NCBI GenBank assembly: GCA_000708835.1
Contig: DF237484.1
Location: 1-62,141, forward strand
Reading direction: 5' to 3'
DNA: 62,141 nucleotides
DNA from: Klebsormidium nitens
Taxonomy: Eukaryota > Plantae > Klebsormidiophyceae
Of the stretch, positions 3,717-56,300 are shown piece after piece. The position numbers and the translations under genes are program-made. A model generated the notes under the pieces. That model did no database searches. It was not told where the DNA came from and was given only the letters and a program-made list of their open reading frames with translations. Within the stretch, counting starts at the first letter, position 1. The number at the start of each line of letters is the position of its first letter.

Positions 3717-4298
3717 CTGAAATAGACACACATTGTTGTGCTTTAAAGTCAACCCGGCTGTACGTGTCTGCAGGCGGATTGCAGATTTCTCGAAGCTGCC
3801 GGCCCACAATCGTGTGCGTTACAGCCGTACATCGTCACACTCGTACAAACCCAATTGGAGCTTAATACTGGGCAGCCCAATTGCCTGAGGACAGGACTCC
3901 GCAAAGGGTTTGCGGCAAACAGGGCAAAAGCTCTCAGTGACAACGGAGCTGCGCGGTTGAAGCGTCTACTTCGACATGGTTCCAATCTGTCCCCCAGCGA
4001 TTTCAAATTTGCATGCGCTCCGGCTGTAGCTAGATGAGCATGAGCCGGTCTGCTCAGGCTGTCCGAGTCAACAAAAAACGATGTATAAACGCGAAAGGCT
4101 GTTGTGTGTATACAAATCATGCGCCCATGTGCGTAGAGCGCGTCAGCCACAAAGAATTGTTGGGACAATTGTGTAACAATTGTTGCTGATTGTCCCTGTG
4201 CTGAGAGGTCTTTTTGATACACTAAACCATTTTCTCGACCTGTCAGACTGATTAAGTATGTTAAACGTCAGCCGGAGCTACTTTCTCCCTTTCCAAAC

Positions 4299-33464: not shown

Positions 33465-33686
33465 ATGGCCATGCTGCTTTGATTTTGTTCAGAAAGCTGT
33501 TCACTCTCAATCATAATGCATTGTGCAACTAGGAGTAGGAGGATGGGCAGCCAATGCCAATGGTGGCACATAGGAACATGGCATCGCCCCATTGAATCAT
33601 GCAATTGAGGGAGTCGCAGCTTGGTGCTGAAGCAAAAACCGTCAAAATTATGCTCGTTGAAGGCTGACACTCCACGCCGGCGCACC

Positions 33687-36600
33687 ATGTCGCGTTTGAT
33701 TGGTGACCTGACAGGGAACATCTTTGAGGAGGCGGACTCGGGTTTTGGCCTGGTGAGCCAGCCGAAGTCATACAAACGGCCTCTCCTGTCTGCTGAAGCG
33801 CAGCCGCGGGGGGCCAGTGGCTTTGTGGGCCTGCAGAACCAGGGCATGACGTGCTACCTCAACAGCCTGCTGCAGACCATGTTCCTGACGCCCGAGCTGC
33901 GCGCCGGCCTGTACCAGGTGCCACTGCAAGAGCTGGGCTTGAACGCGGACGAGATGCAATCGGAGGCAGCAGCAGGGGAACCACTGGGGGCCACCCCCAA
34001 GGAACACGAGGAGGCAAAGCAAGGCCAGATAGATGCGGGAGCAGCTGCGATGGAGTCGCTGATGGGCATGGGTTTCCCAGTTGATGAAGTGGAACGTGCG
34101 CTGAAGAAGTTTCACAATGACGTGCAGCGAGCAGCGGATTGGCTGCTTGCCCGGGCATGCTCAGGAGACAAGGCGGAGCTGCCAGACGAGGATACAGACA
34201 CGTACGAGGACCTGCCGCCCTTGGAAGCGCCGGGGGCTGACGACAGCAGTCCACTGATGGGGTCAGAGGGGTTGATAGTCAGCATGGAGATGGACAAAGA
34301 ACCAGTGGAGGGCCCTTTGACAGCAGTGGCGCAGGATGCGGTGGACGCTTTCAACAAGCGCTTGTATGACATGGATGAAAGTGGTATGGAGGCAGAAGGG
34401 CTGTCGTCATCTCAGAAGAGCGTGAATGGGGCCAACGGCAGTCAGGAGCATGGCAGAGGAACCCAGGGTGGGAAGCACAGAGAGACAGAGGACGCTGAAG
34501 GGGAGGAGGGGGAGGAGGCAGCGGCAGCCATTGGTGGTGACAACACCGCAAATACACCCGCGATTGCTGTTCCGCCAAAGCCAAAACGAAGAAGACGGGG
34601 CCTCATTATTGAGTTGCAGAAGGCGTTCGCATGGTTGCAGGTGCGTCTTAGCCCTGGCGGTCAAACACAGGGTTGATGACAAGTCTCTGAACTGTTTTTC
34701 GTTCATATGTGTAGAGTCTGATGCCCACTCTCTTGCAGATTATCTTGAGATTTAATGCACAGCTTCAAAGGTCCCTGCAATTCTTCGTCCTAACGGAATG
34801 CTTTGGTCTCCATGGAACGTAGAAATTTTGGTGGAGCAGGTCTGCAGAGCCATCTGGACAGGGCCTTCACAGTAACAGTCCAAGTCAATGACCTCACAAA
34901 TGGTGTCCCTGTCGGTTGGCCAGCCAGTACAATCGGAATGCAGGTTTCTGTTTAGCCCCTTCTCAAGCTCGAGTTGCTGCCTTCTGACCTTTGTTGCGAC
35001 ATTTCTGGGCAGGCCGTTGACCAGAAGGCCATCTCTACGGAGGACCTGACGCGGGTGTTTGGGTGGGACGGCAGCGAGGCGCGCGTGCAGCACGACGTGC
35101 ACGAGCTGAACCGCATCCTGTTTGAGAGCGTCGAGTTCTACCTCAAGGGCACCCAGCAGGAGAGCCTCGTCAAGGACCTGTACCATGGCACACTCGTCAA
35201 CCAGGTGCGCCACAACTGAGCCACGCTACACCCGTACGCCAGATCTTCCAGCTTGATTATGCCAGTGCCTTCTCTACGGGTTGATACGGTAGGACTGTCA
35301 TGGGCTCTATGGACGCATCGTTCACATCAAAATCGTCTGTGGGTTGGGTCTCTTGTTGACGAACTTTGCATGTTGCTGGCACAAGACGTCTTTCTCAAAC
35401 TTGCGGAAGATGTTCATTGTGTGTGTGGTGCATCTATTGCGCGCAGGTGGAGTGTTTGCGGTGCGGTGCTGTGAGTGAGCGCCACGAGGAGTTCAGCGAC
35501 ATCCCGGTGGTGGTCAAGGGCTTCTCCAGCCTGGAGGAGAGCCTGGCTGCCGCCGCCAAGGCCGAGATGCTGGACGGGGACAACCAGTACTTTTGCGAGC
35601 GCTGCCAAGCCAAGGTACGCCCTCAACACACCCCCTTCTCTGGCCGCCCTTGCCCGCATTGCTTGCATTTTGCTTCTGGCAGGGAAGCCCCGCCCAAGTC
35701 GAGCTCCTTCCTGAGGTACCCTTGTGACGTCTCGCAGGCCCAGCCCTCAACCGAGCCTGCTCTCTGTGTGCAGGTAGATGCGCAGCGGTCCCAACGCTTC
35801 CGGTCGCTGCCGCCCCTGCTCACGCTGCCGCTGTGTCGCTTTGAGTATGACTGGGACCGCGACGAGCGACGCAAGATCACGACCCCCTTCTCCTTCCCCC
35901 TCACCCTCAACCTGGCCCCCTACATGGCACCCCCCTCCTCGGACGGCCAGCCCGCCAACCACGACGCGGCAGCTAACGGGAGCGCAGGGGCGCCGGGCGG
36001 CCCTGGTGGCGCGGCGCTGTTTGACCTGCTGTCGGTCGTGATCCACAGCGGGAGCGCACACAGCGGGCACTACCACGCCTACATCCGCGACATGCTCAAC
36101 GAGGGCAAAGGACGCCCCGAGGGTCCGACAGCGGGCCAAGACATTTCGTGCGGCTTTGACGTGGCGGCGGGGCTGGAGGGGCAGGTGCGAGGGGGCATGC
36201 TGTATGAGGGCGCCGGCTTCAACGAAGGGCTGGAGCAGGCAGGGTCCGCCATGCATGCACTAGTGGAGGCAGCGGTGCAGGAGAGCGGGCGGGATGCTGC
36301 GGCAGGCACCCCGCACCAGGACGGCCAGGGGGTGACGGACCAGCCAGGGGAACCGAGCGCGGGCAGCAGTCCGGCCGACGCGGCGGAGGGCATGGATGAG
36401 CCAGACTACGGAAACTGGTACGACTTCAATGACAGCAACGTGAGTGTGGTGCACTGGTCCGCCATCACGAGCCAGTTTGGCGGCGGCAACGAGTGCGCCT
36501 ACATGCTCACCTACCGCGCGCGCCTGCCCCCTGGCCAGCTCCTTGCACCCCCTGCCCTGGCAGCAATCGCACACGAGGCACACGAATGCGGAGAAGCAGG

Positions 36601-39600
36601 GCCCCTGGCGGCCAACGGCACTTCTCATGCTGGGGGCGTTGTGGCGACTGTTGGGGGACCTTCTGGAGAGGCCAGCTTACCGGATGTGGCCCACAGAGCC
36701 CTGGCTGTTCCTGGCCACCTGGCGCCTCTGGTGCACAAGAAGAATGAGCAGCTCCGCGAGGAGAGGAGGATCGCGGAAGAGACGGCCGCCAAAGAGGTGA
36801 GCAGCGGCGTCGACACTGTATCTTGGTACCAGGGGTGGCGGCCGCTACAAGAGTGCACACAGGCTGCAGCCGTGGACGGGGCTTCCCTGCATGCGAGCAG
36901 GGATTCGAGCAGCTTGCGCACTGTGACACACTGCGATATGGGGTCGGAATTCCTTCTGTATGTTGTTCCGACACTCTCCTGATCGTGCTATTCATATGTA
37001 GTGAGGTCTCTCTCCTGGTTTGCCTTCTTGCAGGCTGCAGAAGCGGAGGCCGCTCGGGCGGCCAACCAGGTGCGCTTGTTTGTGCATGTGCCGGATGACG
37101 GGTATGTGCGCAGCGGGTACCTGTACAGCCGGCACGAGGACCTGTCGGACGTGGGCCGCTTTCTGGTGCTGGAGCGCAGCAGCACCGTGGGCCAGCTCAG
37201 CGTCATGGTGCGCAACTGGTGCTCCCTGCCCGCACCCGAACTGGCGCTCTACATCGTGTCGCCCAAGATCGATACGCAGGAGTTCGACGAGCCGGCCGAC
37301 GAGCAGGTGCCGGCAGCGGCGGGGTTCGGGGGCCTGGTGGACTGGCGGGAGGAGAGGGGCGGGCCCGGGAAGGAGGCGGAGTCGGTGACGGAGGACATTG
37401 TGTTGGACGAGGACGGGGAGGGCGTGGACAAGCAGGCCAACGGCGCCGCGGACGGGGGGACGCTGGAAGAGGACATGGGAGTGGATGGTGCAACCCCGGA
37501 GGTGAGCATCGTAGCCAAGGGGGAGAGTGAGCCCCTGGCAGGCACGCCCATACGAGATGGTGAGGGGCTCAACGGTCGCGGGCTGGAGGGGGCGCAGGGG
37601 GCGTACCCGCCACAGCGCAGGCTGACTGACGTGTTTGAGGGAGTGGCGCAGAATGGGGACGAGCGAGCGGGGGCGAGAGACGGCGCGAGGGGCGTGGACC
37701 GGGTGGGCACGTCCAGCAGCGGGTCGAGCGCGGACAGCCGCTCCCGGGGCGTCAAGCGCGCCGCGGAAGGGGGCGAGCTGCAGAGCCGGGGCAAGTTCCA
37801 GCCGGAGATCATCCGCGGGCCGCAGCTGCTGGAGTTTCGTGAGCCGACGGAGCCCCAGACCAGCTCCGAGAGCGAGAGGCGGTCCGCGGGGGCCGGGGAG
37901 GGGCCCGCCGCAGCCGAGGGCAGCGGGGTCAGCCTGTCGGGCAGCGGAGGAGCAGGCCTGGCAGAGGGGCTGAGCGGAGTGAACCTGGCCAGGCAGGCGG
38001 ACGGGGACGGAGGCAGCATGCAGGTGAGCCGCGAAAGCAAAGGGAGGGACTGAGATGCAGGAGGGCACGTTGAGTTGCACGTTGGTTCTCAGTCAGTGTT
38101 CTTTGCGGTTTATTATTCGTCAAGCAGACCGACGGATTGCCGACTTGCGTCACCGAATTCTTGCTTCCGTCATGAAAGGCGACAGGCCGTACCTCCTCTT
38201 TGACCGTCGTACTGAAGTCGCAGAGCCCGGTGTTGTTGTCAGGAGGCACCCTGCTTGTTGGTGGAGCAGCCACGCACGAAGAAGGTGCGGCGCACGATCT
38301 ACGAGATCCAGGGGAGGCTTACCATGCGAGACTCTGCACAGAAGCTGGGGGAGCAGATCCAGAACGGCGGGGGCGTGCTGGCCTGGAGTAATGTGAACCT
38401 GCCCCCTCATGGTGAGGGGACGCCCCCTCTCCTGAGCACGACGAAGTAGCAACGTGCTCGAAGCGCCCCAACAAAGCTATCGACAATACTTTGCTAGGGT
38501 TCCTTTGCAAGTGGAAACAGCGAAAGGGCACGCGCTCAGGAGGAGAAGGAGGTAGACCCCGGGTGAGGCTTCTTCGTCAAGCCGGTCGTTTGTGATGACC
38601 GCTCTGTTACCCTGCGCAGGCCTAGACTTTCTGGAGGCCGAAGACACGACTCCCATGGAGGACGGTGGCGGTGAGGCAGCTGCACTCATCTCGTCGTCGT
38701 GCTTCGCAGTCCACCAAGAGCTCAGGAACCGCATGCTGCCCGAGTAGCGAGAGCCATGGATCCGGCTGGCTGCCGGGCATGAGCCCGCTGCAGCCCCAGC
38801 ACGCGGGCATCAATGGAGCCGCATGGTCATGACCAGCTTTGCTGCAAGGCTGCCCACTTTCTTGCTCTAGCACGCCTGGCGTGTTGCCTGCCCTTCTCCA
38901 TGACTCTCAGGCCGCTGTCCTCTCGTCTCCGGTCCAGGTGTGGGCCAGGGGTGGACCTCCTCCGTGGACAACGGGTGGGACGTGCAGCCCTCCGGGTGGG
39001 GCAGCCCGCCGCGCAGCACGCCGCTCTTCACCGTCAAGGTCTACATCCATCTGGACCCCGAGTGAGCGCCGCCACTCGCGGGGCACCCCTTGAGGCAGCC
39101 CTGTCCTGAGACAAGACTGCTGCTCAGCGAAGCTCCTAAAAGACAAGCGCTCGAGGTACTCGTCGGCCGAGCTCGCTCTTGCGTGCGGATTGGAGACACT
39201 TGCATCTTCTGGAACTCTTTTTGACGGTGCGTGGCTCGGTTGGATGCAGTGCAAGCGTGTGCCTGGAGTCGTTCCCGGTGGAGGCGAACACCAGTGTGTG
39301 GATGCTCAAGAGCGAGGCGCTGAAGCGGTACCGCGCGCATGCACACGAGGCGCTCGGCGAGGACGACGTCGTGCTCTGCTGCCAGGCCGCCGCAGGGGGC
39401 CCCGGGGAGACCTTCGACGACAGTGCACTGGTGGTGCAGGCCGGCATCACCGACCAGCAGGTGCGCAACGCCGCTGTGCCGCTTCCTTGACGGCGCGCCC
39501 AGTCTCCTGTCCAGGCCTGCCAGATGCTCGGACGAGAACATGTGCGTGCTTTGTAGTCTTGTTGCGGCGGTGTGTGACGGCGTGCGTGGTGTTCCCGCAG

Positions 39601-42600
39601 GAGGTGTGGGTGCAGCGGCGCTCTGCGGCCCCCTCGTCGTCGTCGGTGCTGCGGCTGAGCATGACCGTGTACGGCAAGGACGGCATGGCGGCTGCGCAGC
39701 TGCCCATCGAGATGCCGCGCGCTGCGCTGCTCGTGGAGCTGGTGGTGAACGCTAGCGAGAGGGGGGCCGCCGCCATCCGCGACCACGCCGCAGCCATCGG
39801 GGCGGAGGCCCCGCAGGAGCCGCAGCTGGTGGTGTGGCGGGACCAGGCGTTCGGGGGCAAGAAGGCGCTCAACGTGGACCAGGACGCGCTGCGCACGCTG
39901 GAGGCCCTCGGCTTCGAGGATGGTGAGCACGCAGCGCCCACATGGGCCGACACGCAAGGCTGGCCACTCAGCACGCGGTGCTTCCTTCGTGCGCCATCTG
40001 CGTGCCACGTGGCAAGAAGCGTCTTCATGTACGACATGCTGACGCCCTTGGGAGGCCCCGCCTGTTGCCCTCTGCTGCTCCCTTGTTCGTGCGCATGAGC
40101 TTGTAGCCTGTCCTGTGGTGCAGGTGACCAGCTGCTGGTGGAAGATCAGGACGCAGTGTCCCCCGAAACAGTGACGGTGCGCGTGCAGCGGTACGTGCTG
40201 CCGCACGATCGTGACGCCGACGAGCCGTGCGCCAAGTTCCTGGCAGCCACCATGGCCGCCACCAGCAACCTGCACGGGCCACCCGAGGCACCGCCCGCGG
40301 CCGGGGACGCTGCGCACGACCAGCAGGTGGGGCCACCTGCACGAGCATGATCGGATGAGGGCTGCGCTGCAGAGACCCTGCTGGCAAGCTCTGGCTGCGT
40401 GGAAGCAGGCCCTCCCGTGACGTGCCACTCGACACCATCACATTGCCGTTGTTCGCCTCTAACGGTGCTGTCTCCTGCTGTTCAGGCGATTGCTGCTCAG
40501 GCTAACAGCCTGGCCGCAATTTTCACTGCTGAGCTGGCGAAACGGAAGTCTGCCGGGGCAAAAGCAGCCCGCGGTGGGGTTCNNNNNNNNNNNNNNNNNN
40601 NNNNNNNNNNNNNNNNNNNNNNNNNNNNNNNNNNNNNNNNNNNNNNNNNNNNNNNNNNNNNNNNNNNNNNNNNNNNNNNNNNNNNNNNNNNNNNNNNNNN
40701 NNNNNNNNNNNNNNNNNNNNNNNNNNNNNNNNNNNNNNNNNNNNNNNNNGCTGAGCTGGCGAACGGAGCTGCCGGGCAAAAGCAGGCCCGCGGNGGGTTC
40801 CGCAGCGCGGGCGGGCGTGCCCCCNCCGCGCCTCGGGGCGGGGCTGGGCCGAGGCCTCGGGGCGGGGCTGAGCCGCTCTCGGGCCCGGCTCAAGGAGCTG
40901 GCACCCGGGGTCCACGCGGCTGCGCCCCCGGGCAGGACTGCACCGCAGGCTGGCGGCGAGCAGGACGGGGGAGGCCGAGGGCCGGCCCCGCTGCAGAGCC
41001 CCTACTCGGCCGTGGCCTCGACAGACGTGGACGGCTCGCCCCCGTCGCGGTTGCCCAAGCGGTTGCAGCGGACGGGGTCGTCTACGGCGGAGCGGGAGCA
41101 GGACGCAGCGGCCCTGCGAGCCGACGCCGGGGGTGCCGCGGCCAGGAGCGCGGTGTCGTCTCCGATGCGCTTCCAGCAGGCGGGGGTGCCGGAGTGGTGC
41201 TTCTGGCCCGTGGACGAGGTGGTGCTGCCCAAGAGTGCCACGCTGGCCGACCTCAAGCGCAGGATCCTGGCCCTGCCGGCCTTCAAGCGCGCCAGGGGGG
41301 CGGGGGCGCTGCCGGCCCTGACCGGGCTGCGCGTGCGCGAGGTGCGCGGGGCGCCCGAGGCGCCGCAGTTGGGCAGAGAGTACCGCGACCTGGACACCGA
41401 CCTCGCGCAGATGGGCGTCGCGGAGGGGCAGCACCTCGCAGCGCGGTGAGTGGCAGGCGCAAGGCGAGGAGGCACGGCCAGCAGGGCAGCGGGCATGGGC
41501 TGCAGATCGAATTGCGCCACCCTGGGCAATGACTGCGCAACCAGACGTGGCATCAAGGCGTGTCGTCTGATGGTGCTCGAAGGCTCGTGGCATTCAAGAA
41601 ACGGTCATCCTGACGGGTATGAATGCAGCATCATCCCCATAATCTGATTGTGTCCAACGTGACGTCGCTTCTTGCCTGTCCAGTGTCTGGCTGCCCCGTC
41701 ATGATAGTGCTCGCTTCGCATGCGCAGGATCCTGCCTCCCAACGAGGAGGCCCCGCTGTCGGACTGCGACAGCCTGCCGGAGCTTGTGGACTACACAGAG
41801 GACGACGGCAGCGGAGGAAGCGGCGCCGCCACTCACGCACACCAGGCCCCCGAAACGGCAATGGCCGAGGCGTCGGCCGACCTCGACCTCGGAGAGGCGG
41901 CTGCTGGCTTTGGAGCGGGGGGTGCGGGGCTGGAGCTGCCCACGTCGAGCGGGTCGGGTACGAGCGGGGGGGCACGCGGGCGGGCCGGGCCGCGGCTGGA
42001 GCGGGGCAGCACGAGCATGGAGGTGGCGGTGGGGGACGNNNNNNNNNNNNNNNNNNNNNNNNNNNNNNNNNNNNNNNNNNNNNNNNNNNNNNNNNNNNNN
42101 NNNNNNNNNNNNNNNNNNNNNNNNNNNNNNNNNNNNNNNNNNNNNNNNNNNNNNNNNNNNNNNNNNNNNNNNNNNNNNNNNNNNNNNNNNNNNNNNNNNN
42201 NNNNNNNNNNNNNNNNNNNNNNNNNNNNNNNNNNNNNNNNNNNNNNNNNNNNNNNNNNNNNNNNNNNNNNNNNNNNNNNNNNNNNNNNNNNNNNNNNNNN
42301 NNNNNNNNNNNNNNNNNNNNNNNNNNNNNNNNNNNNNNNNNNNNNNNNNNNNNNNNNNNNNNNNNNNNNNNNNNNNNNNNNNNNNNNNNNNNNNNNNNNN
42401 NNNNNNNNNNNNNNNNNNNNNNNNNNNNNNNNNNNNNNNNNNNNNNNNNNNNNNNNNNNNNNNNNNNNNNNNNNNNNNNNNNNNNNNNNNNNNNNNNNNN
42501 NNNNNNNNNNNNNNNNNNNNNNNNNNNNNNNNNNNNNNNNNNNNNNNNNNNNNNNNNNNNNNNNNNNNNNNNNNNNNNNNNNNNNNNNNNNNNNNNNNNN

Positions 42601-43546
42601 NNNNNNNNNNNNNNNNNNNNNNNNNNNNNNNNNNNNNNNNNNNNNNNNNNNNNNCTTCTCCCCCACCTCTCCGAACGGCCTCGCCTCCCCGCCCCTTGTG
42701 AAGCGCCAGTTTGTGTTCACGTCCCCGGAGGAGGTTGCGCTGGACACGGGGCGGGCCGTGCTGACAGCGGCGGAGCTGAAGGCCGTGCTGGCGGCGCATT
42801 TCGGCATTTCGGCGGGGGCGCTGCGGGTCATCAAGGTGGACGCCGCCAAGCTCAAGGTGCTGCCCGAGGACGACACCCCAGGTACGGCCACTGCACCGCT
42901 GCGGGCTGAGAGAGCATGCTGACGGAGTGTGCGATGAGAGCCGAGGGGAAGAGACGCCTCGACTTTTGAAAAGTAGAGGCTCGGTTTTCAAAGACGCGCA
43001 CTGTTGGGCTTGCATCATACGATAGCTGAGACTCTGCTCATCGTGTCCCGCTCTGGAGGCTGCGTTGCTTGGGTCCAGGTGCCCGCCGCTGCCGTGCCTG
43101 GCTAACCGGAGTGCGCCCGTGCTGCAGGGACCAAGGCCGGTCAGGGTGCGCATGACCGCCTCAATGGCGACGCCGCCCCATCTCTGGACGGAGGCCCGGG
43201 GCTGGGCAAGACGGGCAAGGGGAAAGGCGCGACGGGCAAGCCGGGCTTCCGGCCGAGCAATGCGAGCCTGGGTGCATCGGTGAACCTCAAGGGACGGCCT
43301 TTTCAACTGAGAGACGGAGACACGATTGTGGTAATGGACGCGGCAGAGGACCCGGAGCAGGAGGACCCCTGGTGTGCGGACTCGCTAGGGCCCGGCGTGG
43401 GGAGCCGGGTCAAGCTGGGGCCGGCACCGCTGAACACGACGTGGGAAGGCAGCGGCTATCACAAGGGGCCGTCCATCGGGCCTACCGAAAAGAAACAGCG
43501 AAGACCAGAAGCAACCCTTCGGATTCGCATGGACGAGTACGACTGA
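33687..43546 (+). CDS. USP40: ubiquitin-specific protease, USP40-like, with UBA insert and C-terminal ubiquitin-like repeats; interrupted by two assembly gaps
   Basis: Cys box GLQNQGMTCYLNSLLQ; STEDLTRVFGW...QHDVHELNRILF...LYHGTLVNQ; CLRC and CERC zinc pairs; His box VIHSGSAHSGHYHAYIRD; WYDFNDS. N-terminus (GNIFEE) and C-terminus (PEATLRIRM) resemble animal USP40 as I recall it. Confidence 0.88.
40583..40749. other. assembly gap (N run) with duplicated flanks
   Basis: 40528-40582 and about 40750-40801 are near-identical copies (gctgagctggcgaa...gccgggcaaaagcag...cgcgg...ggttc) differing by small indels. Confidence 0.9.
42039..42654. other. assembly gap (616 N) inside the USP gene
   Basis: N run flanked on both sides by GC-rich coding sequence. 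Confidence 0.98.
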
Positions 43547-44678: not shown

Positions 44679-46560
44679 CTACATGGTCATGTCCGCAGAC
44701 TCGGCGCGCAGCTTCTCTTTAAACACGAGATCTTTTTTGATGTGGCGCAGGTACGCCCCAAACATGTCCTCCGGCATGCTCACGTTCTGCTGGTGGTAGA
44801 TGCGCATCGCCGCAACAGTGTGCTGCTCGCGCCACACGCTGCACACGGAAGGGGTGCGCATCTCAGCTGCAGCAGACGCAAGGCAGTTCGCATATGGAGT
44901 CTCTGCAGCCTGTAACGGACGTCACACACCCTCAGACCGCCAAAATTTTGCCGGCCTACCCTCGGGTAGCCCTATCCTCGTGCACGTGTCTGGAGCCCCT
45001 CCGAGCCTGCCTGCGCGGCTGCTCGCTAGTGGGCCTGCCTGCTCCGGGGTGCGCTCACCTGTCGGGGTCCATGAGGACGGGGTCGGTGAGCGGGTACGCA
45101 TCCACGAGCGAAGTGTCCTGCAGCGGGACGTGCCACTCCAGGTACTTGGCCCCCTGCAGGTCTGCCAGGTTGCGGTACTCGCGCCCCACCAGCCGCCCCT
45201 TGCCCCATTCCCCGTACGGCAGAATCTGCATCACCACCGCCCCCGGCCGCAGGAGGGCCAGGTTGGCCAGCCCCGCCCCGTGCACCGCCACCAGCACGTC
45301 CAGCTGTCGCAGCGCGCGCACCGCCTCCTGCGGCCGCAGCTCCTCCAGGACCAGGGCCACCGCACGGTACCCAGCCGCCTCCGCAGACGCGAGCATCGCC
45401 TCAAAGTTGGCCAGCACGCGGGTGCCGCGCCGCTGCACAATGCCCACCACGGGGGTGCTGCCCTCCGCGACCTGCACCCGCGCAGGGGAGGGCACCTCCG
45501 CGCGCAGCCCCGCGGCAACAAAGGGGCCAAAGTCACTGAGGCGCGCCCCCGCCAGGCTCTCGCTGCGGGTCTCCAGGCCGCCGAACTCGTCGTACATGCA
45601 CAGGTGGTGTCGCAGCCCGATCGTGACGCGCTCAAAGCACTGCACGCCCTGCGCCTCGCCCTGCGTGTCATTGCGCTGCCCGAGGAGGCGGATGCGGTGC
45701 TTGGTCATGGCCCCCACCAGCGTGTCCGCCGCGGGCGCCCCCCGCCACCACCATGGCCCCTTGAGGTCGGCCACAAAGAGCACCACGTCGCGCGCAAGCT
45801 GGCGGACCGTCTGGAACAGGGGCAGGAAGACCTCGTTGAAGTCATGAAATGCACCCCCGCAGTAGCCGCCAGCAGAGAACACGGCAGCAGGCGCGCGGTG
45901 ATGGGAAGTGCACTCCCAGTGAGGGAATTCCTGGCTTGCCGCAGCATCCATGGCGCGGATCCTCAGCTCTGTCACATCTCTCATTGCATTGTAGTCCCAC
46001 TTGCGAGGATGAGGGCGGACCGAGAGCGGCCCGCGGAGTATGGCGGGATCTCTTGCAAACAGCACAATCTCTCCCGTCTCCACATTGATTCTTACGTCGC
46101 CCTGCAGTGTGCAGACATCGGTCAGAGGGGAGTGCCTGTCACATTCAAAAGCCTCTTTATGTGTCTGCCGCTCCGCCATGGACAATTCCTGCACCTCTTC
46201 CTGCACAAGCCGCGGCACCTGCTGCTCCCCCAGCATCTTCTGGTTCGAAGCCTTCTTGGCCCGCTTCTCCTCCTTGCCTACCTCACCCTCGCTCCTCGCA
46301 CCCTCCGGACTCTGTTCGCCCACCAATTTCCTAGACCCTGCTCGGAGCGGGTTGCCCCCCAGTTGCACCTGTGGCCCTGTCATTTCCAGACGCTCGCGCC
46401 CTGCATATGCTGTCCATACCAGCAGACAAATGAGTGCGCACGCACAGGCTACAACAGCATACCTGCTTGCGGTCCCCATTCCGCCAACCTTGGCAGCCCT
46501 CAGCTTGCGGTATTGAGCATAGCGGTGATCCAGCAGGCCATACCAGGCACTGGAGGTCAT
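44679..46560 (-). CDS. glycosyltransferase family 61 (DUF563), type II membrane protein, two exons
   Basis: Transmembrane YAVVACACALICLLVWTAY; CDRHSPLTDVCTLQGDVRI; VRPHPRKWDYNAMRDVTE; AVFSAGGYCGGAFHDFNEVFLPLF; LVAVHGAGLANLALLRPGAVVMQILPYG. Intron 45058-44839; last exon IYHQQNV. The start could be 46560 or 46479. Confidence 0.9.
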
Positions 46561-47254
46561 GCCGGCACAGGATTGGAGGATTGCACTCTCGCTTGCACGG
46601 GCAGAGCTGTCGCCTCTTCGAAAAGACGACTGCTTCACGGCTCTGCTCTGCTCGCGCTGTCCTGTTGATTTCAAATACCGTAGTGCCTTCCTCAGTTCCT
46701 GCCCCAGGCTCCTGCCTCCAGCCTTGCAACTTCCCTAGATCTGGAGTCTGGGAATTGAAGCAGATCGTAACCCGCTGTTTAAACCCTGATCAGTTATACC
46801 TACAATATTGTCAGCTCGAAACAAACGGCACCGTGTCTCCTGGTTTGACGATCTTGAAGCCCGGACGACGTGTGTACCGGTACCCAAACGTCGGATCACG
46901 TCACGGGAGGCGTCATTGCGGATGCCCATGAACCTCTACGGTACCGGTCAGCTAACCCCTGTGTGAACTCCGCATTGACGGCAACTCCAACGTACAATCA
47001 GCTTTCAATTGGAGATCCACACAATGCAGCTTGTTCATCTTTCAGCTGGTTTTGTTGGCTTCCTCCTTCCCTTTCCACTTGGCACTTCAAGGTTCTGGGT
47101 CGAGCTACAGCTTCCCTCACTGCCATGTGCATTGCGGAGCGGCAGCTGCTGAAGTGCATGTGGTGCGCTGTGAGAATACAGCAGGAGTTGCCGTCCTCGC
47201 TTGGGTTGAAATGAGCTGAGGAGGGCTGCCCCGCTTGCCTTGTTCCTGACGGTC

Positions 47255-50200
47255 ATGGGCAGCTGGACATTCACAGGCCCGCAGGGGCACCTGCTCACAT
47301 GCACGTACATCCACCCCGCATTTGACGACCGCAGGCACACCGCCGCAGCGTCCACCTGCACGCCCCTTGCGCACCAGACGCCTGGGGGCAGAGATCTGGG
47401 CCGAACTGCGGGTGCAGCAGCCCCTGATGCTGCGCTGATTGTCTCCTCAAAGGACAGCGATGGGGTACGAGTTGCTGACAGGCAGGCCAGCAATGCTGCC
47501 GCCTCCGCGGCCCACACACTGGAGAGGCCGCTCCAAAAGGACCTCGCGGCCCTCAGTTCCTGCGTGGCCCTCCGCACTGGCTGGGCGTCAAGCGCTCCGC
47601 GCCCGGTGCGATGCCCCCCCAGCATGAGCGCAGCAGCGCACCCAGAGGAGGGCGCACGCCGCTGGTCGATCGGGCATGTGCTGAGGACGGCCGCCCTGGC
47701 CCTCTTCTTTGGTGGTGCCGCCTCCTTCACGCGGCGCATCCTCGCGACGCTGCCCCCCGACTTCATTGCGCGGTGGCGCAAGCTGCTGGCGGACCAGCCG
47801 GAGGACAGTGCGGCCCTGCTGGACAACCCGCAGCCGACGATAATCTACGACCGGCATGGCACCGTGATTGCCACCATCGTGTCGGGGGGCATCGGCACCA
47901 CCAAGGAGGGCGGCGACGCGGACGCGCTGCTGCAGCCCATCGAGATCCCTACCGCCATGTGGCAGGCCATCGTGGCGCACGAGGACCGCCGCTTCTTTGA
48001 CCACGAGGGCGTGGACATCCGCGGCCTCTCGCGCGCCATCATCTCCCTGGGCCAGTCCGGCGGGGGGAGCACCATCACGCAGCAGGTGCGCCGCTGCCTG
48101 CCCCCATCTCCTCGTCTGCACAGACATGCGTGGGGCATCCTGTGGGGCAGGGCGCCCTTGCGTGCGTACCCTCGCTGACCCCTGCTCTGTGATGCGCCTG
48201 ACCCTGCTCCGCGTGTGTGCTTGTGGCCGCAGCTGGTGAAGAACGTGTTCTTGACCAACGAGCGCACGTGGTCGCGCAAGCTGGTGGAGATCCTGCTGTC
48301 GCTCGTGATTGAGAAGCAGATGTCCAAGCTGGACATCCTGCACCTCTACATCAACAAGGTGAAGAATGCCTGCCCCCACCGAACCAACACGCCCCCAGCA
48401 GCCTCTTGACTGGCTGCTTGCATACAATGTCATTGCACTCCCAAAGTGGGGGCTTTGGCTAATGTCACCCATTAAGTCTTCCTACCTTGGGGCTTGCCGT
48501 TCTTGCCTCGGCCGTCGGCCGTCCCATAGCCGTGCTGGTGCGCTGGTGCAGATCTACTGGGGCCACGGTGTGTACGGCATCAAGGCTGCGGCTGCGCTCT
48601 ACTTTGGGAAGCACCCGTCCATGCTCACCGTTGGCGAGTGCGCCATGCTGGCCGGCATTGTCCCCGCCCCAGAGCTCTACTCACCGCTGCGAGACCCCAG
48701 CCGGTGAGCAACGGGCTACCGTATCTCAGAAAGGGCGTCTTGTCCATGAAAAGGCTGCCATGCTCTGGGGGGCGCGTAAGAGTTTGTCAGCACGCTGGCC
48801 AGGCGCGGCGCCAGCCAGCGCTTGCTCAGATGTGGGGGCCTGCCTGCTTTGTCGCTGAGGGGATGGGCGGCTGTGTGCGCAGGGGCAAGAAGTCGCAGGC
48901 GCGCGTGCTCAAGGCCATGGTGGACGCGGGCTACCTGGACCTGCACACCTGCCAGCAGGAGGCGCGGGCGCCCATCCACCTCTCCTCCGGCAAGGCAGCC
49001 GGGGCCGGGCCCTGGCGGGCGCCCTTCTTCATCAGCGAGGTCAGTCCCCCGGACTCTAGCTGGTTTGGGCCTCATCCGGCCGGCTATGCTAACCAGGACC
49101 CTACTCCGCAGGATCCATGTGCAGCCATCAGCGATTTCCCCCTGGGCTGCGGCGCTGAGGCGTGTGTGTGCGTGTGTGCGTGCGGCAGGTGCTGCACCAG
49201 CTGAAGCAGCAGTATGGCGAGGCAGTGCTGCACGGGCGCGGGCTGCAGGTGACGACCACGCTGGACCTGCCGTGGCAGGAGGTCGCGGAGGCCGTCCTCA
49301 AGGAGGGCTGCGCCGAGTACGACGAGGAGCGCCTCGAGTTCGGCGAGCGCGACGTGGCGCGCATCCGCGAGAAGCTCAAGCGAGCGGAGAACGAGCGCAT
49401 GCGCGGGCTGTACGAGACGGTCCTGGGCGACGCTGTGGCGGAGGTCAAGGCCGCGGGGCAGGCCAGGTGGGGCTGCGGGACAGCATAGCCACCGGTCTCA
49501 TGGGCAACGGAAGGAGCCCACAAGGCTTACAGCCTCGAATTGGCAATGCACTTGATTACAACTCAAGCGAACTGCCGACGGCTCCAATTGATTGCCCGCC
49601 GTGTGGTACTGGATGCGCTCTGGTGCTCGGCACGGCGCTATCACTCTGGCTGTGCGGCACAGCGTGGCGGTGGGCTCTGACCGCGCGTGCGTGCGTGCAG
49701 GATGGAGGGCGCCATGGTGGTGATGGACCAGCAGGACGGCGCAGTGCGCGTCCTCGTGGGCGGCCGCGACTACTACGAGAGCTCCTACAACAGGGCCACC
49801 GAGGTGAGCCCCTCCGCCGCGCACGCCACGCTGGCCATTGGAGCAAGGCGGGATGTCCTCAGGGCAGGCGCAGTCGCGTGGAGTAGGAGCTGACACTGCA
49901 AAACTTGGGACGCCTTTTTGATTCCTGGGTGTTCTCATTGTCTGCTGTATGTGCAGGCGGAGCGGCCGTCAGGGTCGACCTTCAAGCCCGTGGTCTACCT
50001 CACAGCTCTCGCCGAGGGATAGTGAGCAGCCGTGACCCTCGTATACAATGGACTAAAGCGCGTCTCGATGCAGAGAACGGCTCCTGCGTAGCTCCATGCT
50101 GCACCGGTCGCTTGCGCTCTTGAGACCGCTCCTCGTACTCCCACGGTCTGCCCGTCCTGCTTGTGCTGCGCGCGCGGTGCGTCCGCCGGCTGAGCGTGTG

Positions 50201-53200
50201 CGTGGCTGCGGTGGTGCAGCAAGGCGCGGCACCCGCTGGTGGACGAGCCGTACACCATCGGCGGCTTCACCCCCGAGAACTTCGACCGCAAGTTCCGCGG
50301 CAAGGTCACGCTCGAGCAGGCGCTCGTCAAGTCCATGAACGTGCCCACCGTCAAGCTCTGCGCCGAGGTCGGCATCGACAAAGTCGTGCGCCTCGCCCGC
50401 GCGCTCGGCATCGAGCGCCGCCTCCCGCACGAGCTCGCCGTCTCCCTCGGCATGTGCGAGGTCAGCGCCGCCGCCACCAACTCTGCCCCATGCATCCCCC
50501 TCCTCGTACCCTGACGCTGTTGGGACTTACAAGGCGCGTTGAGCTCCCCTGGCTGACCTTCGTCCTGACGAGCTGTGCGTGTGTGCGCCGCAGGTGACGC
50601 CCCTTCAGTTGGCCAACCTGTATGCGACGATTGCCAACGGCGGCACCGTCTTCCCGTCGTACCTCATCACCAAGATCATCAACGCCAAGGGCCAGATCGA
50701 CTGGGAGCACAAGGTCAGCACGCCACGCCTCCCCCACTCCCGACCTGTCCCCTCCTCTCGGCCCCGGCTCGTATGCTCACTGCGCCGGCGCTCTCTGGCC
50801 GTCTGCCGTGCGCGCTGTCGTCTCGCTGCTGACGCACACTGGGGGGGGGTGCAGGTGGAGGCGTGCGGGCAGGCCGAGGTGGGCGAGAAGGCGATGCCGG
50901 AGCTGCGCCGGCTGCTGCAGGCCGTCATTGAGCGCGGCACCGGGCGGGCCGCCAAGATTGGGCGCCCCGCGTGCGGCAAGACCGGCACCTCCGACGGCTT
51001 TCGCGACGTCTGGTTTGCCGGCTTCACCCCGCAGATGACCGCCGTGGTGAGCCCTGGCGCACGCGCAGTGTTACCAACGGGAATTTCTGTAGTGTAGCTC
51101 GGGTACCTCCTGCCCAGGCCGTCGGGCTGCTGCGTCTGCTGGCGCACTCTGCTGTCTCCTACCCCAAGCGTGGCTCTCGGCTGTGCGTCCTGGCTGACCC
51201 CCCGCTGCGGTGTGCCTGCCAGGTGTGGCTGGGCTACGACAACAACTTCACCGTGGGGGGCACCCATCCAGGTAACCGCGCCCCCCCTCCCACCAGCACC
51301 GCCCCCCTGCATTTGCCCCTCTGCCTTGATTACCCGCGTCCTGCTTCCTGCCATTGCCGTCTCCCGGCCTGCGTGCGCATATCTCGTTGCTGCTGCACCT
51401 TACTCGCAGCTTCCCTGTGCCTCTGCAGCCACGGGTGCCTCTCACGCGGCCCCGCTCTGGAAGCGCTTCATGATGAAGGTCCACGAGGTGAGCCCCCATG
51501 CGCTGCAACCCCCCTCGCCGCTTGATGCACACTGCCTTCGCTCTGTGCTGCACCCGCATGGCCAGGCTGCTCCCCTGCCGGGCCTTCCCTCAGCTGCCTG
51601 GTCGCCAACCCGCGCTTGCCCCCTGTGTGCGTGCAGCGGATGCCGGTGATCCGCTTCGAGGACCACTTCAAGCACCAGCGCAGCTTTGCGGTAATGGAGG
51701 CGGCCCCCCGCCTGCTGCGCGCCGCAGACGACGACGAGGAGGATGAGCAGCCCGCACGGGCGGACCAGGTCAGCCAGCGCCCCTGCTAGTCTGCCTGCTG
51801 CCTGCCGGGGCGCGCCCTCGTTTTCAAGCACGGGCCAGAGGCCCCTGTACGCCCTTCTGGCCCCTTGCAGCGTGCTTAGAGATGCTCGCAGTTTGTCGAT
51901 GCGCTCAGCGGCTGACTCGCTGCTCCTCCGTGCAGGCTGCGGTGTATGCGCCGTTCGACCCGCGCGAGCCGGTGCCGTGGCGGCACGTGTGGGACTGGGA
52001 GGTGGCGAGCAGCCTGTGGTCGGAGCGCGAGCGCATGGGGAGCTACGTGGCGCAGCGCGCGGCCAGCATGAAAAGCCGCGGCCTAGCCGTGCCGCGCCTC
52101 GACGAGGAGCGCCCCTGGGACTTCTACGGCGAGACCGAGGCCGCCGACCAGGACGACGCCACCACCGCGCTGTGCGTCATCGACCCCATCGAGGCCCACG
52201 CGCAGCCCCCGCCTCCCGCCAGCTTCCCGGGCCTGGCGTGGCACGGCCGGCGACGGGGCCGGGGCAGCAGCGCGCGGCGCATGAAGGAGGGGGAGCGCAG
52301 CCCGCTGAGCCCGCTGTTTGGGCGGCTGTACGAGAAGTGGGTGTGGGCGGAGCAGAACGTGCGCAGCAACGGGCGCGTGCCCAAGGACATCCGCACCGTC
52401 GCCGAGTTCGAGGAGTGGCACGGCGCCATGCTCGCGCAGCAGCCCGCCCACGCTGCGCACGAGCTCACCTTCAACTCCTGCGTCGACACGAGGCCGCTCC
52501 GCCTCGAGGCCCCCAACCCCCTCCTCAGCAGGCCCCCCGCCCTGCCGAGGTTCCCCGGCATGGGTGCAGGGAGCGTGGCGCGCGGGGCAGGGCGGCCGCC
52601 GGTGCTGTCGTCGGGGTGGGCGCAGGACCCGTGGGAAGCGGAGCCCAGCAGCCCGCGGCGGCTGAGCATCAGCCACAGCCGCAAGAAGATCCGCGGCTGG
52701 GAGCCAGGGTCGCCGCGGCGCGGGGTCAGCCCGGCCGCCTCGCCGAGGGGCAGCCCGGGGAGGTCGCCCCCGGGCACACCCGCCCCGCACGAGGCGGCAG
52801 CGCAGCCCCCGAGCGGGCAGCTCATTGCGGAAGCGGTGAAGCAGGTGAAGAGCCGGGAAGCGGCGGAGAAGCAGCGGGAGGAGGAGGAGCGGCGAGGCCG
52901 GCTGCCTCTGCTGCAGTTTGGGAGGCGGAGCAAGGCGCGCGCGCAGGAGGAGCCGGAGGAGGAGGGGGACGACTGGCGGGCCGTGATGGAGGACAGCTTC
53001 GCGTCCAAGGTGGCCAACCGGTGGGGCACCGGCGAGGACGAGCCGGAGCCGTCGCCGGCGCACATGTTCAGGCTGCCCAACGTGGGGCAGTCGTTCAACC
53101 TGGGGAGCCTGAACAACTGGAAAGAGCAGCTGCAAAGAGACAAAGAAGCGACCGAGACAACATCCGAAGCCCAGGCACCTTCCAGGTTGCCTCCAAAGTT

Positions 53201-53363
53201 AGTCCAACAAAGCCCGGACTCTGAGGCAACTACTGCTTCCAAACTGCCCCATCCGCCAACCTCATTGACTCTGCCGTCACCTACCGATAACGAAGCCCCC
53301 ACTACCCAACTATCTCCAAGAAGGTCGCGGAGGAGGTCGAGACGAAGGGTCAAAGTTGTATAG
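47255..53363 (+). CDS. PBP: class A bifunctional penicillin-binding protein (transglycosylase plus transpeptidase), plastid peptidoglycan type, about 13 exons
   Basis: Transglycosylase motifs EDRRFFDHEGVD (47981), GGSTITQQLVKN, RKLVE, LYINKIYWGHGVYGI. Transpeptidase SxxK STFK (49975-49986), SxN SMN (50332-50340), KTG (50978-50986), DVWFAGFTP. Long uncharacterised N-terminal leader; start codon tentative. Confidence 0.95.
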
Positions 53364-56300
53364 GAAGCAAATGCACCGTGTTTGGATTGAGTGGGCCGGA
53401 AGTGGGTTGGCAACTTAATAACATGCAATCATGGTTGGAAGGAAATTAAGTAACTTTGCAACGTGCTCTAAGGATGGATGCTTACCATGTCATAAATCGC
53501 CGCACCCTAATGAAACAAACCAACAAAATGCTTTGTTCCTTTCTAAGGAGAAGAATCTTCGGACATTGCAGCATCGGTTTCAAGCTTGGTTATTGTACAT
53601 GGGTCGTGGTAAATAATCCTCAACATGCACTTTCATTCTGAAACCCTCTATTGAACAATTTGCAGGTTACTCAAATGGTCGTTTGCGAAGCACATTATTG
53701 TACAAATGGTGGCATAATTACCGCATTAAATGCATGTGCGTCACAAATCATCGTCGACGAATGTTTGTGTGCAGCATGCTAGCACAAAAATTTGTACATG
53801 TCTTAGTCTCGACTTTTATATTTGTACAAGTAGTCGGGGCTTGATTGACACTACGTAGCGAAGCTTAAAGAATTGGCTGAAGATACATATGCATATCGTC
53901 AATGAAGAATGTACAATGACCACGTACCTCAGCATGGCTGGTTTTTCCAACTTTTAGCCTGGTGCAGCAAGGCTTCAAACATCCGCGCTGGCAAGTCCCA
54001 TACGAACTTAAAATACGTGATAATATAGATTGAAGGGCGATCGTGCATGTAACTTAGTAATGCATGTGCTCATCTACCGATCACAATGCCATGCACTGTG
54101 GCGATCAACATTAGAAATTCGATACTTGTCAGCTGATGCATGATCGAGATATGCGATAATGCATGGGATTTCCGAAGCACGGCGCTACTCATCAATCTTA
54201 ATAAAAGATGAAAAAGATGTTGAAACATATCCGGCCAACAAGATAATCAACGCTTCAAACTGGAAAGTAAAGTTGTGCTTCAGCATTGCTTATAACACAA
54301 TCGTGCATTGCAACACAAGCGAAATGCACACAAAAACCGACGCAATTCATTTGAAAACAGCAATTAACCAATTCATTCAACAACTTAAAATGACTAAGTT
54401 TGAGATTAGTTATGCAACATTTCAACTTCGTGATGAACCCCTTGCCGTGACGTCGACATGATGAAGTACAACAAGGCTTTCTAAAGTTGCAATCTTATTG
54501 GCCAAATCTAAAGATGAATTGTCCAGACGGTAATCAAAAAGTGTTGTCATTAAAAGCAAAAATGTGTCATACCATGTCACGCTTAGTACTCATCCAAAAA
54601 ATGGTTTTGCACCGACCGGTCGATCATGGCCATGTGCACATGCAAGAGAGGCTTGCAAGGGTCTCGTGGGGCGCAGAGCTTAATCGAAGAAATATTTCGA
54701 CGAATACAATTGGTGCTGACAACTTGGTTTGTCACCCCACGCCGGGTGTAGTACGCAATGATGAACACAATTGTGTATAATTCAGAGATGCGATTGAATA
54801 TATACATCCAAATGGCATAGTACCTAGATCACCACACCCAACCAATGGACTCACATTAAAAGCTAGACCAAGCATATGCATGCAGCAAACGAACACAATC
54901 TTTGAGTGCGCATAAATTCAGCCGCATGTTTCCGTGACTCAACCTTGAAGAAAATAGACTCACTCAAGAACCTTTAGTGGATGAGGTGTGTTACCTCTCA
55001 GCAGCGTTTCCATCGTCCCTCTTACCATCTTGCTACCGTGAGGCTTAGGTCCCGCCGCGGTGCACCGGACCAACTATTGCAAGTAGTCATCCATGAACGA
55101 CTCGCACATGCGAAGAATTCCTTCTACTCGACGAAGTTATCATGGGAACTGGAACAATCCTAAGCAACCAAGTTTGGGCATGTGCTTACGGTATTTTCAA
55201 ATCTAGAAGTATATTTACAATCCCCCATTCTAGAGGGCCACCCGTTGATTTGGCTACTAAAGCCTGTCCGTGGATCGATTGCACGCCACCATCATAATTA
55301 AGAAGATGGCAACAAATCAGATTCATCGATGGAGGAAGCAGATGAACACTTCAAGCAGATCATGGTAAATTGATGGTAAATCTTATTTGTACGCCACTTT
55401 TCCGACGCATTCTTTTGCAGAAAGAAGGAACACAGTCAACGGCCAGTCCCGCAAGAACTCTATGCAACAAAGGTTTTGGCGCACAAGCAATCTATGGTGG
55501 GTACCGGGAGTATCAATCCCGTACCATTGCAATCACAATTTTGTTTCACTGGTGTCGCGACTCGCGACAAGTCTTGTACGCAGTACTGACGACCCTATTC
55601 GACGGTAATCGTGAATCCGGTCCAATTTCATGAATTTGAGATTTTCTGACATCTTAATCAACGCCGAAGTTCTGTAGAACTCGGCAGTACGGGTACGTAC
55701 CCACAGTCGATACTTTGGTCTGCGCGTCCATAAAAATTGACTTCTATGGTCTCGATCGCGGAAGTTCCGACTCGACCACTCTAGAGTACCGCGGTACACA
55801 CGCTGAAAGAAGTTGAAGGAATAGTGTTAGAAAAGGCGCATTTCAAGAAGCAACAATGGTGGTCAACTTTGCGCCTTATATGTCGCTTCCTGGGATTTAA
55901 CCGCATCAAAGCGCTAGGTTAGAGCTTTCAAGGACCCATAATGACGCCCTTCTGAGGTGTTGCTATGCTTGTCAGCGCTTTCTACATGCTGCATAAGCCT
56001 CTTCAATTGAGCACCATTTTGATGCTTCTGTCAGAGTGTAAAGCATAACACTATTTTACAATTTTAGCACACACACTCACGGCCAAGCGGAATTCTGCGA
56101 GTACTTGTAACGTACACGTGTAACATAAACCTGTGTCGACGTTACACGAACCGCCGGTAATACTAACGGTATTCTATGTACGTACCGGGACTGGCAAATT
56201 TGCGACGGTCGAAGTCGAAAGTGACTCGGCGGCGTAACACCCCCCTTAGGTAGCTTGTGTGTTGGCGCTAGCCAAGGGAAACATAATTGGGATATTTACT

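Follow-up and report, generated by a model that had tools for sequence, protein, structure and literature searches.

A long C-terminal extension spliced in frame to a class A penicillin-binding protein of Klebsormidium nitens

The window considered here is the whole stretch of DNA that was analysed, i.e., 62,141 nucleotides of the alga Klebsormidium nitens (GenBank assembly GCA_000708835.1, contig DF237484.1, positions 1 to 62,141). At 47255–53363 on the forward strand it contains a single intron-rich nuclear gene for a class A penicillin-binding protein (PBP), whose coding sequence comprises 14 exons, 3933 nt and 1310 residues; the PBP part extends to residue 791, and the last 519 residues form a C-terminal tail, which is the subject of this report. 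That the tail is a real, selected and mosaic part of the protein appears nearly certain from spliced transcript contigs and from comparisons with the corresponding sequences of close relatives (contigs L001, L002 and L004/L005) and of a distant one (contig L003).

The PBP gene and the splicing of its tail exons

Exons 1–12 (47255..51487, + strand, 791 codons) encode a presequence, one putative hydrophobic anchor, the transglycosylase and the transpeptidase, and end with ...KVHE. Exon borders from 48900 onward were taken from spliced transcript contigs, those of exons 1–4 from GT..AG sites, frame and conservation. The open reading frame (ORF) pieces upstream of the tail matched the Pfam families Transgly (PF00912; 5.6e-15) and Transpeptidase (PF00905; 4.8e-11). 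In the exon translations EDRRFFDHEG and GGSTITQQ were located in exon 1, RK..E...SK in exon 2, and STFK, SMN and KTG in exons 7, 8 and 10, respectively; the best match of exon 10 among PDB sequences was to PBP1a (3udf; 4e-08). With a GT51 glycosyltransferase carrying the catalytic Glu motifs and a transpeptidase carrying SxxK, SxN and KTG, the enzyme is an ordinary bifunctional class A PBP by both catalytic domains. From KTG to ...KVHE there are about 60 residues, so that the end of the transpeptidase fold roughly agrees with the position given in the original prediction, a first reading of this DNA by a model. The most hydrophobic window of the protein is found in exon 1; its 19-residue Kyte-Doolittle mean of 1.28 is modest, it contains an Arg, and it is tied with a stretch of the transglycosylase in exon 3.

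In the exon encoding APLWKRFMMKVHE, the last codon of ...KVHE occupies 51485–51487 and is followed by a GT donor. Intron 12 (51488..51636, +, GT..AG) separates it from exon 13 (51637..51768, +; 44 codons, phase 0 to 0), which begins with 16 conserved residues (RMPVIRFEDHFK.QRS) and continues as a variable acidic linker. After intron 13 (51769..51935, +, GT..AG) follows, again with a phase 0 junction, exon 14 (51936..53363, +), consisting of 475 codons and the stop codon TAG (53361–53363). The 3' untranslated region (UTR) was assigned to 53364..53665 (+), where conservation decreases to 0.46–0.57.

Evidence for this structure came from transcript contigs of four public runs from four studies, which were presumed to be RNA and were aligned to 48900–54600. 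Each run yielded one contig of 4.35–4.48 kb with zero mismatches, from which all introns were removed at GT..AG borders; the contigs thus represent spliced mRNA. Intron 12 was absent from all four (joint 51485>51635, cut +2), as was intron 13 (joint 51765>51933, cut +3). Since the contigs are continuous from the PBP exons through exons 13 and 14, they derive from a single mRNA and not from two genes. The fusion of two more exons to the PBP, as originally proposed, was therefore borne out, and the motifs quoted at that time are all present in the frame of exons 13 and 14. Transcripts ending before 51936, or a last exon forming a gene of its own, would have argued against the proposal; the contigs cross both junctions and end at 53520–53665. 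If intron 12 were retained, the read-through frame would stop at 51647–51649 and a tail-less enzyme would result; contigs of this type cannot reveal rare isoforms.

Several observations concern the remainder of the gene. A highly charged stretch (EYDEERLEFGERDVARIREKLKRAENERMRG...) is encoded by exon 5 (49190–49466), which lies between the parts for the transglycosylase and the transpeptidase; compared to bacterial PBPs, this stretch may be another insertion. L001 lacks precisely the intron at 50714–50854, the flanking exons being fused in frame. In L002, the counterpart of the exon at 50220–50460 contains two inserted stretches, one of 148 nt (after window position 50302) and one of 197 nt (after 50396), which look like additional introns. 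Intron presence in the PBP gene thus differs between close relatives.

Coding status, anatomy and relatives of the tail

Exon 14 has a GC content of 75%, and two other frames as well as the opposite strand are open for 350–490 codons. An open frame is therefore weak evidence for coding in this region, since the same GC content keeps the other frames open, too. The ORFs at 51743–53224 (+), 52083–53135 (-) and 52124–53428 (-) were rejected as by-products of this composition; codon-position statistics favour the annotated frame.

Changes in the last exon at first, second and third codon positions numbered 30/28/66 against L001 and 101/75/170 against L002. Nucleotide identity of exons was 0.89–0.98 with L001 (exon 13: 0.84) and 0.73–0.94 with L002, compared to 0.65–0.80 and about 0.5, respectively, for introns. 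Codons were compared exon by exon, and split codons were skipped; the ratio of non-synonymous to synonymous substitution rates (dN/dS) was 0.12 (L001) and 0.16 (L002) for the catalytic exons, 0.29 and 0.31 for exon 14, and 0.25 and 0.66 for exon 13. The GT..AG sites flanking exons 13 and 14 are all kept in L001 and L002. Two relatives retain the frame of the tail over its full length; in a third, it is retained for the first 257 residues, at which point the contig ends. The excess of changes at third positions, the dN/dS of about 0.3 and the kept frame indicate that the annotated frame is coding; judged from these comparisons, the tail is translated and is under purifying selection which on average is about half as strong as that on the enzyme.

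The selection is unevenly distributed. In the following, residues are counted from the start of exon 14 (residue 1 = 51936), and proportions of non-synonymous (pN) and synonymous (pS) differences are given block-wise against L002. The first Trp block, B1 (residues 1–85; 51936..52190, +; pN 0.127, pS 0.28), has a Trp-rich core, PWRHVWDWE.ASSLW.ERERM, at residues 14–34 (51975–52037, +); a helix was predicted by AlphaFold for residues 21–47 with low confidence. It is followed by a Pro-rich linker (residues 86–100; 52191..52235, +), which with pN 0.387 and pS 0.355 (ratio about 1) is nearly neutral. B2 (residues 101–184; 52236..52487, +; pN 0.081, pS 0.27) consists of an Arg-rich run and the second Trp block (LFGRLYEKWVWAEQNV ... 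EFEEWHGAM), the latter being invariant in the window and in the proteins P0001 and P0003 of the two full-length relatives; helices were predicted at residues 128–142 and 155–167, with local confidence scores (pLDDT) of about 58 at most. A variable linker (residues 185–221; 52488..52598, +) is again nearly neutral (pN 0.442, pS 0.574; ratio about 0.8).

The strongest constraint was found in the next block of 61 residues (222–282; 52599..52781, +), which reads ...GWA.DPWEAEP.SPRRLSISHSRKKIRGWEPGSPRR... and then contains six S/T-P sites. Only 3 non-synonymous, compared to 21 synonymous, differences were counted there (pN 0.022, pS 0.429), and its dN/dS of about 0.04 is the lowest measured in the PBP gene. 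The adjoining charged segment (residues 283–346; 52782..52973, +; pN 0.227, pS 0.446) holds the predicted 27-residue helix 294–320 (52815–52895), which had the highest pLDDT of the tail (54–66). This helix, described earlier as a short coiled coil, is highly charged, with a hydrophobic moment of 0.16 and a mean hydrophobicity of -0.55; these values would agree with a single charged helix no less well than with a coiled coil. The third Trp block (residues 347–404; 52974..53147, +; pN 0.125, pS 0.457) contains the invariant residues W347, W363 and W395 and overlaps a predicted helix at 389–408. The succeeding Pro/Ser/Thr-rich segment (residues 405–459; 53148..53312, +) is variable and weakly constrained (pN 0.437, pS 0.884; ratio about 0.5), and the Arg/Ser-rich C-terminus (residues 460–475, SPRRSRRRSRRR.K.V, with the stop codon; 53313..53363, +) is conserved (pN 0.088, pS 0.651).

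The tail as a whole is rich in P, R, A, S and E; Trp accounts for 3.2% of its residues, and 15 of 15 Trp are invariant across the three full-length sequences. B1 and B2 had no detectable similarity to each other, so that no internal repeat was found, and only short, low-scoring tandem repeats were detected in the DNA of the tail. From the pattern of differences, the tail is a mosaic of conserved modules parted by near-neutral linkers.

Over the last 92 codons of the coding sequence (53085–53360, 276 nt), the GC content at third codon positions is 0.57, compared to 0.95 before, a decrease which coincides with the weakly constrained Pro/Ser/Thr segment. This end may be a younger part of the coding sequence, taken from a former 3' UTR.

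Relatives of the tail are few. When the last exon was compared by HMMER with 1.84 billion representative proteins, one true match was obtained, P0001, with 88% identity; a second protein, P0002 (2459 residues, of a cell-surface type with tandem repeats), was rejected as spurious, having matched via 12 short W-H-G-like repeats. P0003 (66–70% identity) was added by a word-index search, which covers proteins of 0.55–1.75 times the query length. The contigs encoding P0001 and P0003, i.e., L001 and L002, respectively, contain the same PBP exons upstream. A search with the transpeptidase exons yielded a fourth close relative, L004/L005, with 81% identity, whose contig ends after tail residue 257. 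A word-index search with B1 among proteins of 285–908 residues returned only P0001 and P0003, and no relative was found in two metagenome scans (with B1/B2 patterns and with a pattern of the Ser-Pro block) or among 185,579 genomes of bacteria and archaea, which were scanned for two words of B1. The bacterial contig L006 was set aside.

L003 (Logan SRR22405887), which was obtained by the same transpeptidase-exon search, is a 7-kb contig with 40–45% GC and introns of up to 1.2 kb, and thus derives from another kind of genome than the window. Its PBP exons match those of the window exon by exon (exon 10, 77%; exon 12, 74%; exon 8, 61%; exon 9, 43%). The exon ending in ...KHVHE (2672–2728) possesses a GT donor, and an AG acceptor at 3900 precedes an in-frame final exon of 67 codons (L003:3901–4104), which contains KIPWRDVWDWEKASIAWEEREKMEEW and is followed by a stop codon. 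The tail profile matched this exon with 32.6 bits (E 7.7e-10; hmmsearch against 372 six-frame pieces), as did tblastn, and found nothing further in the 2.9 kb of L003 downstream of it. In the alignment of five sequences, P-W-R-x-V-W-D-W-E-x-A-S-x-x-W-x-E-R-E-x-M is invariant. A possible counterpart of exon 13 at L003:3287–3394 has the same phase and an alignable stretch (LPIQKFHD compared to MPVIRFED); the similarity is weak, however (E 0.058). The tail of L003 thus comprises 67 residues, or about 103 with the weakly supported extra exon, and holds the B1 motif only.

Since B1 is present in the distant L003, it would be the older, common part of the tail, and these alignments make it probable that this eukaryotic PBP originally ended with B1. 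The remaining approximately 430 residues, i.e., the second Trp block, the Trp/Ser-Pro/Arg block, the charged helix, the third Trp block and the Arg/Ser end, were found in the window's own clade only and would represent a clade-specific expansion. As far as the searches of 1.84 billion proteins and of 185,579 genomes reach, the extension is non-bacterial, as had been anticipated. The conservation expected of the Trp-rich blocks was observed in part: B1 extends to L003, whereas the second Trp block, the Ser-Pro tract and the helix did not appear beyond the close relatives.

Searches of Pfam (E up to 10) gave no family for exon 13, exon 14 or any of the three orthologous tails; PDB sequences (E up to 10) gave no match to the tail profile or to exon 13, and a feature search of the ESM Atlas gave no usable match to the tail. 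Domains known as accessory or wall-binding parts of PBPs (PASTA, FN3, OB/ODD, LysM, SPOR, PG_binding, SH3b) were not recognized with Pfam or PDB. To judge from these comparisons, the tail is outside any described domain family, and the possibility that its domain was already known did not materialize. AlphaFold, run with an alignment of three sequences, predicted isolated helices only, both for the whole of exon 14 (pLDDT 41.5, predicted TM score (pTM) 0.16) and for residues 1–184 (pLDDT 37.1, pTM 0.23). Runs with three sequences are no proof of disorder; equally, they lend no support to the earlier suggestion of probably folded Trp blocks. Membrane-binding helices were also considered and not adopted; a hydrophobic moment of 0.46 was reached by residues 128–142 only, which would favour such a role weakly.

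Possible functions of the tail

Class A PBPs possess an N-terminal anchor, and their catalytic domains are outside the cytoplasmic or stromal side. No membrane segment was found in exons 13 and 14, where the 19-residue Kyte-Doolittle mean reaches 0.30 at most; from this and from its position after the transpeptidase, the tail should share the plastid intermembrane space with the catalytic domains. By a general polymer estimate, about 500 largely unfolded residues should be long enough to cross the intermembrane space and the thin wall. The tail would most likely be a long, flexible and multivalent interaction arm in this space, whose short conserved Trp/Arg motifs would bind partners in the envelope or the division apparatus, and/or the anionic wall, and whose contacts would place or regulate wall synthesis. 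In function it would then be a host-evolved counterpart of the contact between Lpo proteins and PBPs, of the tail of Bacillus PBP1 and of the contact between PBP and PDV2 in moss. These three precedents make an arm for positioning or regulation the leading reading, though the mechanism is put forward at clearly less than even chances; the explanation as a whole, a real mosaic tail which acts as an interaction arm, we would regard as evenly poised between right and wrong.

One bacterial parallel is the C-terminal intrinsically disordered region (IDR) of Bacillus subtilis PBP1, which has 121 residues and without which PBP1 does not function fully in vivo (Brunet et al. 2022, PMC9732909). Purified PBP1 without the IDR keeps normal glycosyltransferase activity, and the IDR was proposed to steer the synthase to gaps in the wall, where wall is needed (PMC9732909). 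As the algal tail may be, it is an unstructured extracytoplasmic extension after the transpeptidase of a class A PBP. It is, however, poorly conserved and poor in aromatic residues and works when scrambled, whereas the algal tail has 519 residues, strongly constrained blocks and 15 invariant Trp; the two are dissimilar in sequence. The poor conservation, scarcity of aromatics and irrelevance of residue order which characterize a composition-driven IDR are thus not features of the algal tail. Since the latter is sequence-specific, defined partners, or contacts of Trp and Arg with wall or lipid, would be expected to matter rather than disorder as such.

In Escherichia coli, Lpo lipoproteins cross the wall and switch on PBP1A and PBP1B (PMC9732909). 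LpoA and LpoB, activators in the outer membrane, provide a long flexible element which spans the wall between membranes and couples a class A PBP to the outer layer, for which the algal tail would be long enough; they are separate, inward-reaching lipoproteins, whereas the algal arm would be part of the PBP itself, and there is no homology. In plastids, the PBPs of moss and spruce are situated at the chloroplast envelope (PMC12681378), and according to Chang et al. 2024 (as cited in PMC12681378) a moss PBP binds, in the intermembrane space, the C-terminus of PDV2, a division protein invented by the host. To the extent that this citation conveys it, a plastid class A PBP of Physcomitrium touches a division protein, and this is the kind of partner that the tail or B1 could serve. 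Another enzyme of plastid peptidoglycan synthesis, streptophyte MurE, has eukaryote-specific, partly unfolded N- and C-terminal extensions, which are thought to mediate new interactions; the C-terminal one is highly conserved across streptophytes and the N-terminal one widespread (Dowson et al. 2022, PMC9434261). MurE resembles the algal PBP in being such an enzyme with acquired extensions, but enzyme, compartment (stroma) and sequence are different, and most of the PBP tail is clade-specific.

A C-terminal extension on a plastid PBP was not described in the literature searched. Rather than the undescribed system that was originally suspected, the tail is an appendage on a known enzyme: new, host-added and expanded within a lineage, and containing one older conserved motif. 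It illustrates how an enzyme derived from an endosymbiont gains host-specific appendages, and in places it is selected more strongly than the catalytic core. As to host control over the relic peptidoglycan wall in chloroplast division, the binding of PBP to PDV2 in moss is, to our knowledge, the only reported link. The tail would offer concrete handles here, since short, defined motifs are amenable to deletion, exchange or use as bait. Should it be dispensable, it would simply be a disordered extension, specific to one lineage, of an enzyme already known.

The idea can be extended, with a result that we consider rather unlikely as it stands: B1 of streptophyte PBPs would be a docking motif, invented by eukaryotes, for the host division machinery (e.g., intermembrane-space parts of PDV/ARC6-type proteins), the Klebsormidium-type tail an expanded, multivalent control arm, and the Trp/Ser-Pro/Arg block a second and possibly phospho-regulated dock. 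If this were true, it would tie the relic bacterial wall to host control by a concrete molecular link.

Several points weigh against the interaction arm. Plastid targeting and an orientation with the N-terminus inside and the C-terminus outside were taken over, as assumptions, from the class A PBPs of bacteria and from work on moss and spruce. The occurrence of B1 outside the close relatives comes from one contig, L003. The predicted helices of the tail are not strongly amphipathic, and the AlphaFold models, with a depth of three sequences, would be compatible with a small folded domain. Finally, the extreme constraint on the S/T-P sites is also what would be expected of a phosphorylation switch.

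According to this last alternative, the conserved S/T-P and RRLS sites would be phosphorylated by proline-directed or basophilic kinases and would couple wall synthesis to the host cell cycle. The tail contains 13 S/T-P sites (compared to 7.5 ± 2.3 in shuffled sequences), 11 of which are invariant in the three full-length sequences, and four [ST]Px[KR] sites where 1.1 would be expected; the sites are clustered and conserved, some with the full consensus, as in targets of proline-directed kinases, and the block which bears them is the one with the dN/dS of about 0.04. The enrichment is modest, however, since it was reached by 37 of 2000 shuffles. Furthermore, a tail without a membrane segment should reside in the intermembrane space, where kinases of the CDK/MAPK type are not known; the Arg and Trp between the sites are equally invariant, which suggests a binding surface over bare phospho-acceptors, and the block is absent from L003. 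We consider such a switch unlikely as the principal function, but it could coexist with an interaction arm as a regulatory layer.

Unlikely to the same degree is a new small folded domain, missed by AlphaFold, in which B1, B2 and perhaps residues 347–404 would bind glycan or peptidoglycan. Aromatic residues are typical of sugar-binding sites, and with this the 15 invariant Trp would agree, as would the retention of B1 in L003 and the recurrence of the predicted helices in both AlphaFold runs. Against it stand the low scores of these runs (pLDDT 37–41, pTM 0.16–0.23), the near-neutral linkers between the blocks and the lack of similarity in Pfam and PDB; in addition, B1 stands alone in the 67-residue final exon of L003, which is too little for a domain of several blocks.

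It is very unlikely that the tail is processed or used elsewhere, i.e., that it is a pro-region cleaved after import, or that its Arg/Ser end and motifs resembling DPW and W-acidic ones have a role in the cytosol or nucleus, prior to import or in its place. Nuclear or RS-type sequences are indeed resembled by SPRRSRRRSRRR at the C-terminus and by the runs of SP and Arg, but the tail follows an N-terminal presequence and a putative membrane anchor typical of plastid PBPs, and the PBPs of moss and spruce are at the chloroplast envelope (PMC12681378).

A functionless read-on, in which GC-rich 3' sequence became exonic and was merely tolerated, is highly improbable and would appear largely refuted by the selection analysis. 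It would account for the many open frames at 75% GC, for three near-neutral segments, for the decrease of GC at third positions near the end and for the lack of homologues of most of the tail beyond the clade; it would not account for conserved blocks with dN/dS of 0.04–0.3, for the excess of third-position changes, for the preservation of frame, stop codon and splice sites across relatives with dS of up to 0.6, or for B1 in a distant relative. A last exon wrongly joined from a separate downstream gene, as its length (1428 nt, following 13 short PBP exons) might suggest, can practically be dismissed, since both junctions are contained, in frame, in the spliced contigs of four studies and the same arrangement is present in L001, L002 and L004.

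Other features of the window

Upstream of the PBP gene, a neighbour on the opposite strand (45055–46674, -) encodes a Glyco_transf_61 domain (5.2e-09). It also precedes the PBP gene in L001, and the local gene order is thus conserved. A run of N at 42040–42654 represents an assembly gap, which accounts for an apparent bin of 26% GC and for false long ORFs. At 17849–18952 (+), a weak match to NatB_MDM20 (3e-06), just under the Pfam cut-off, possibly indicates a NatB auxiliary subunit. ORF pieces at 33621–36982 (+) contain UCH and UBA domains and belong to a gene for a ubiquitin carboxyl-terminal hydrolase.

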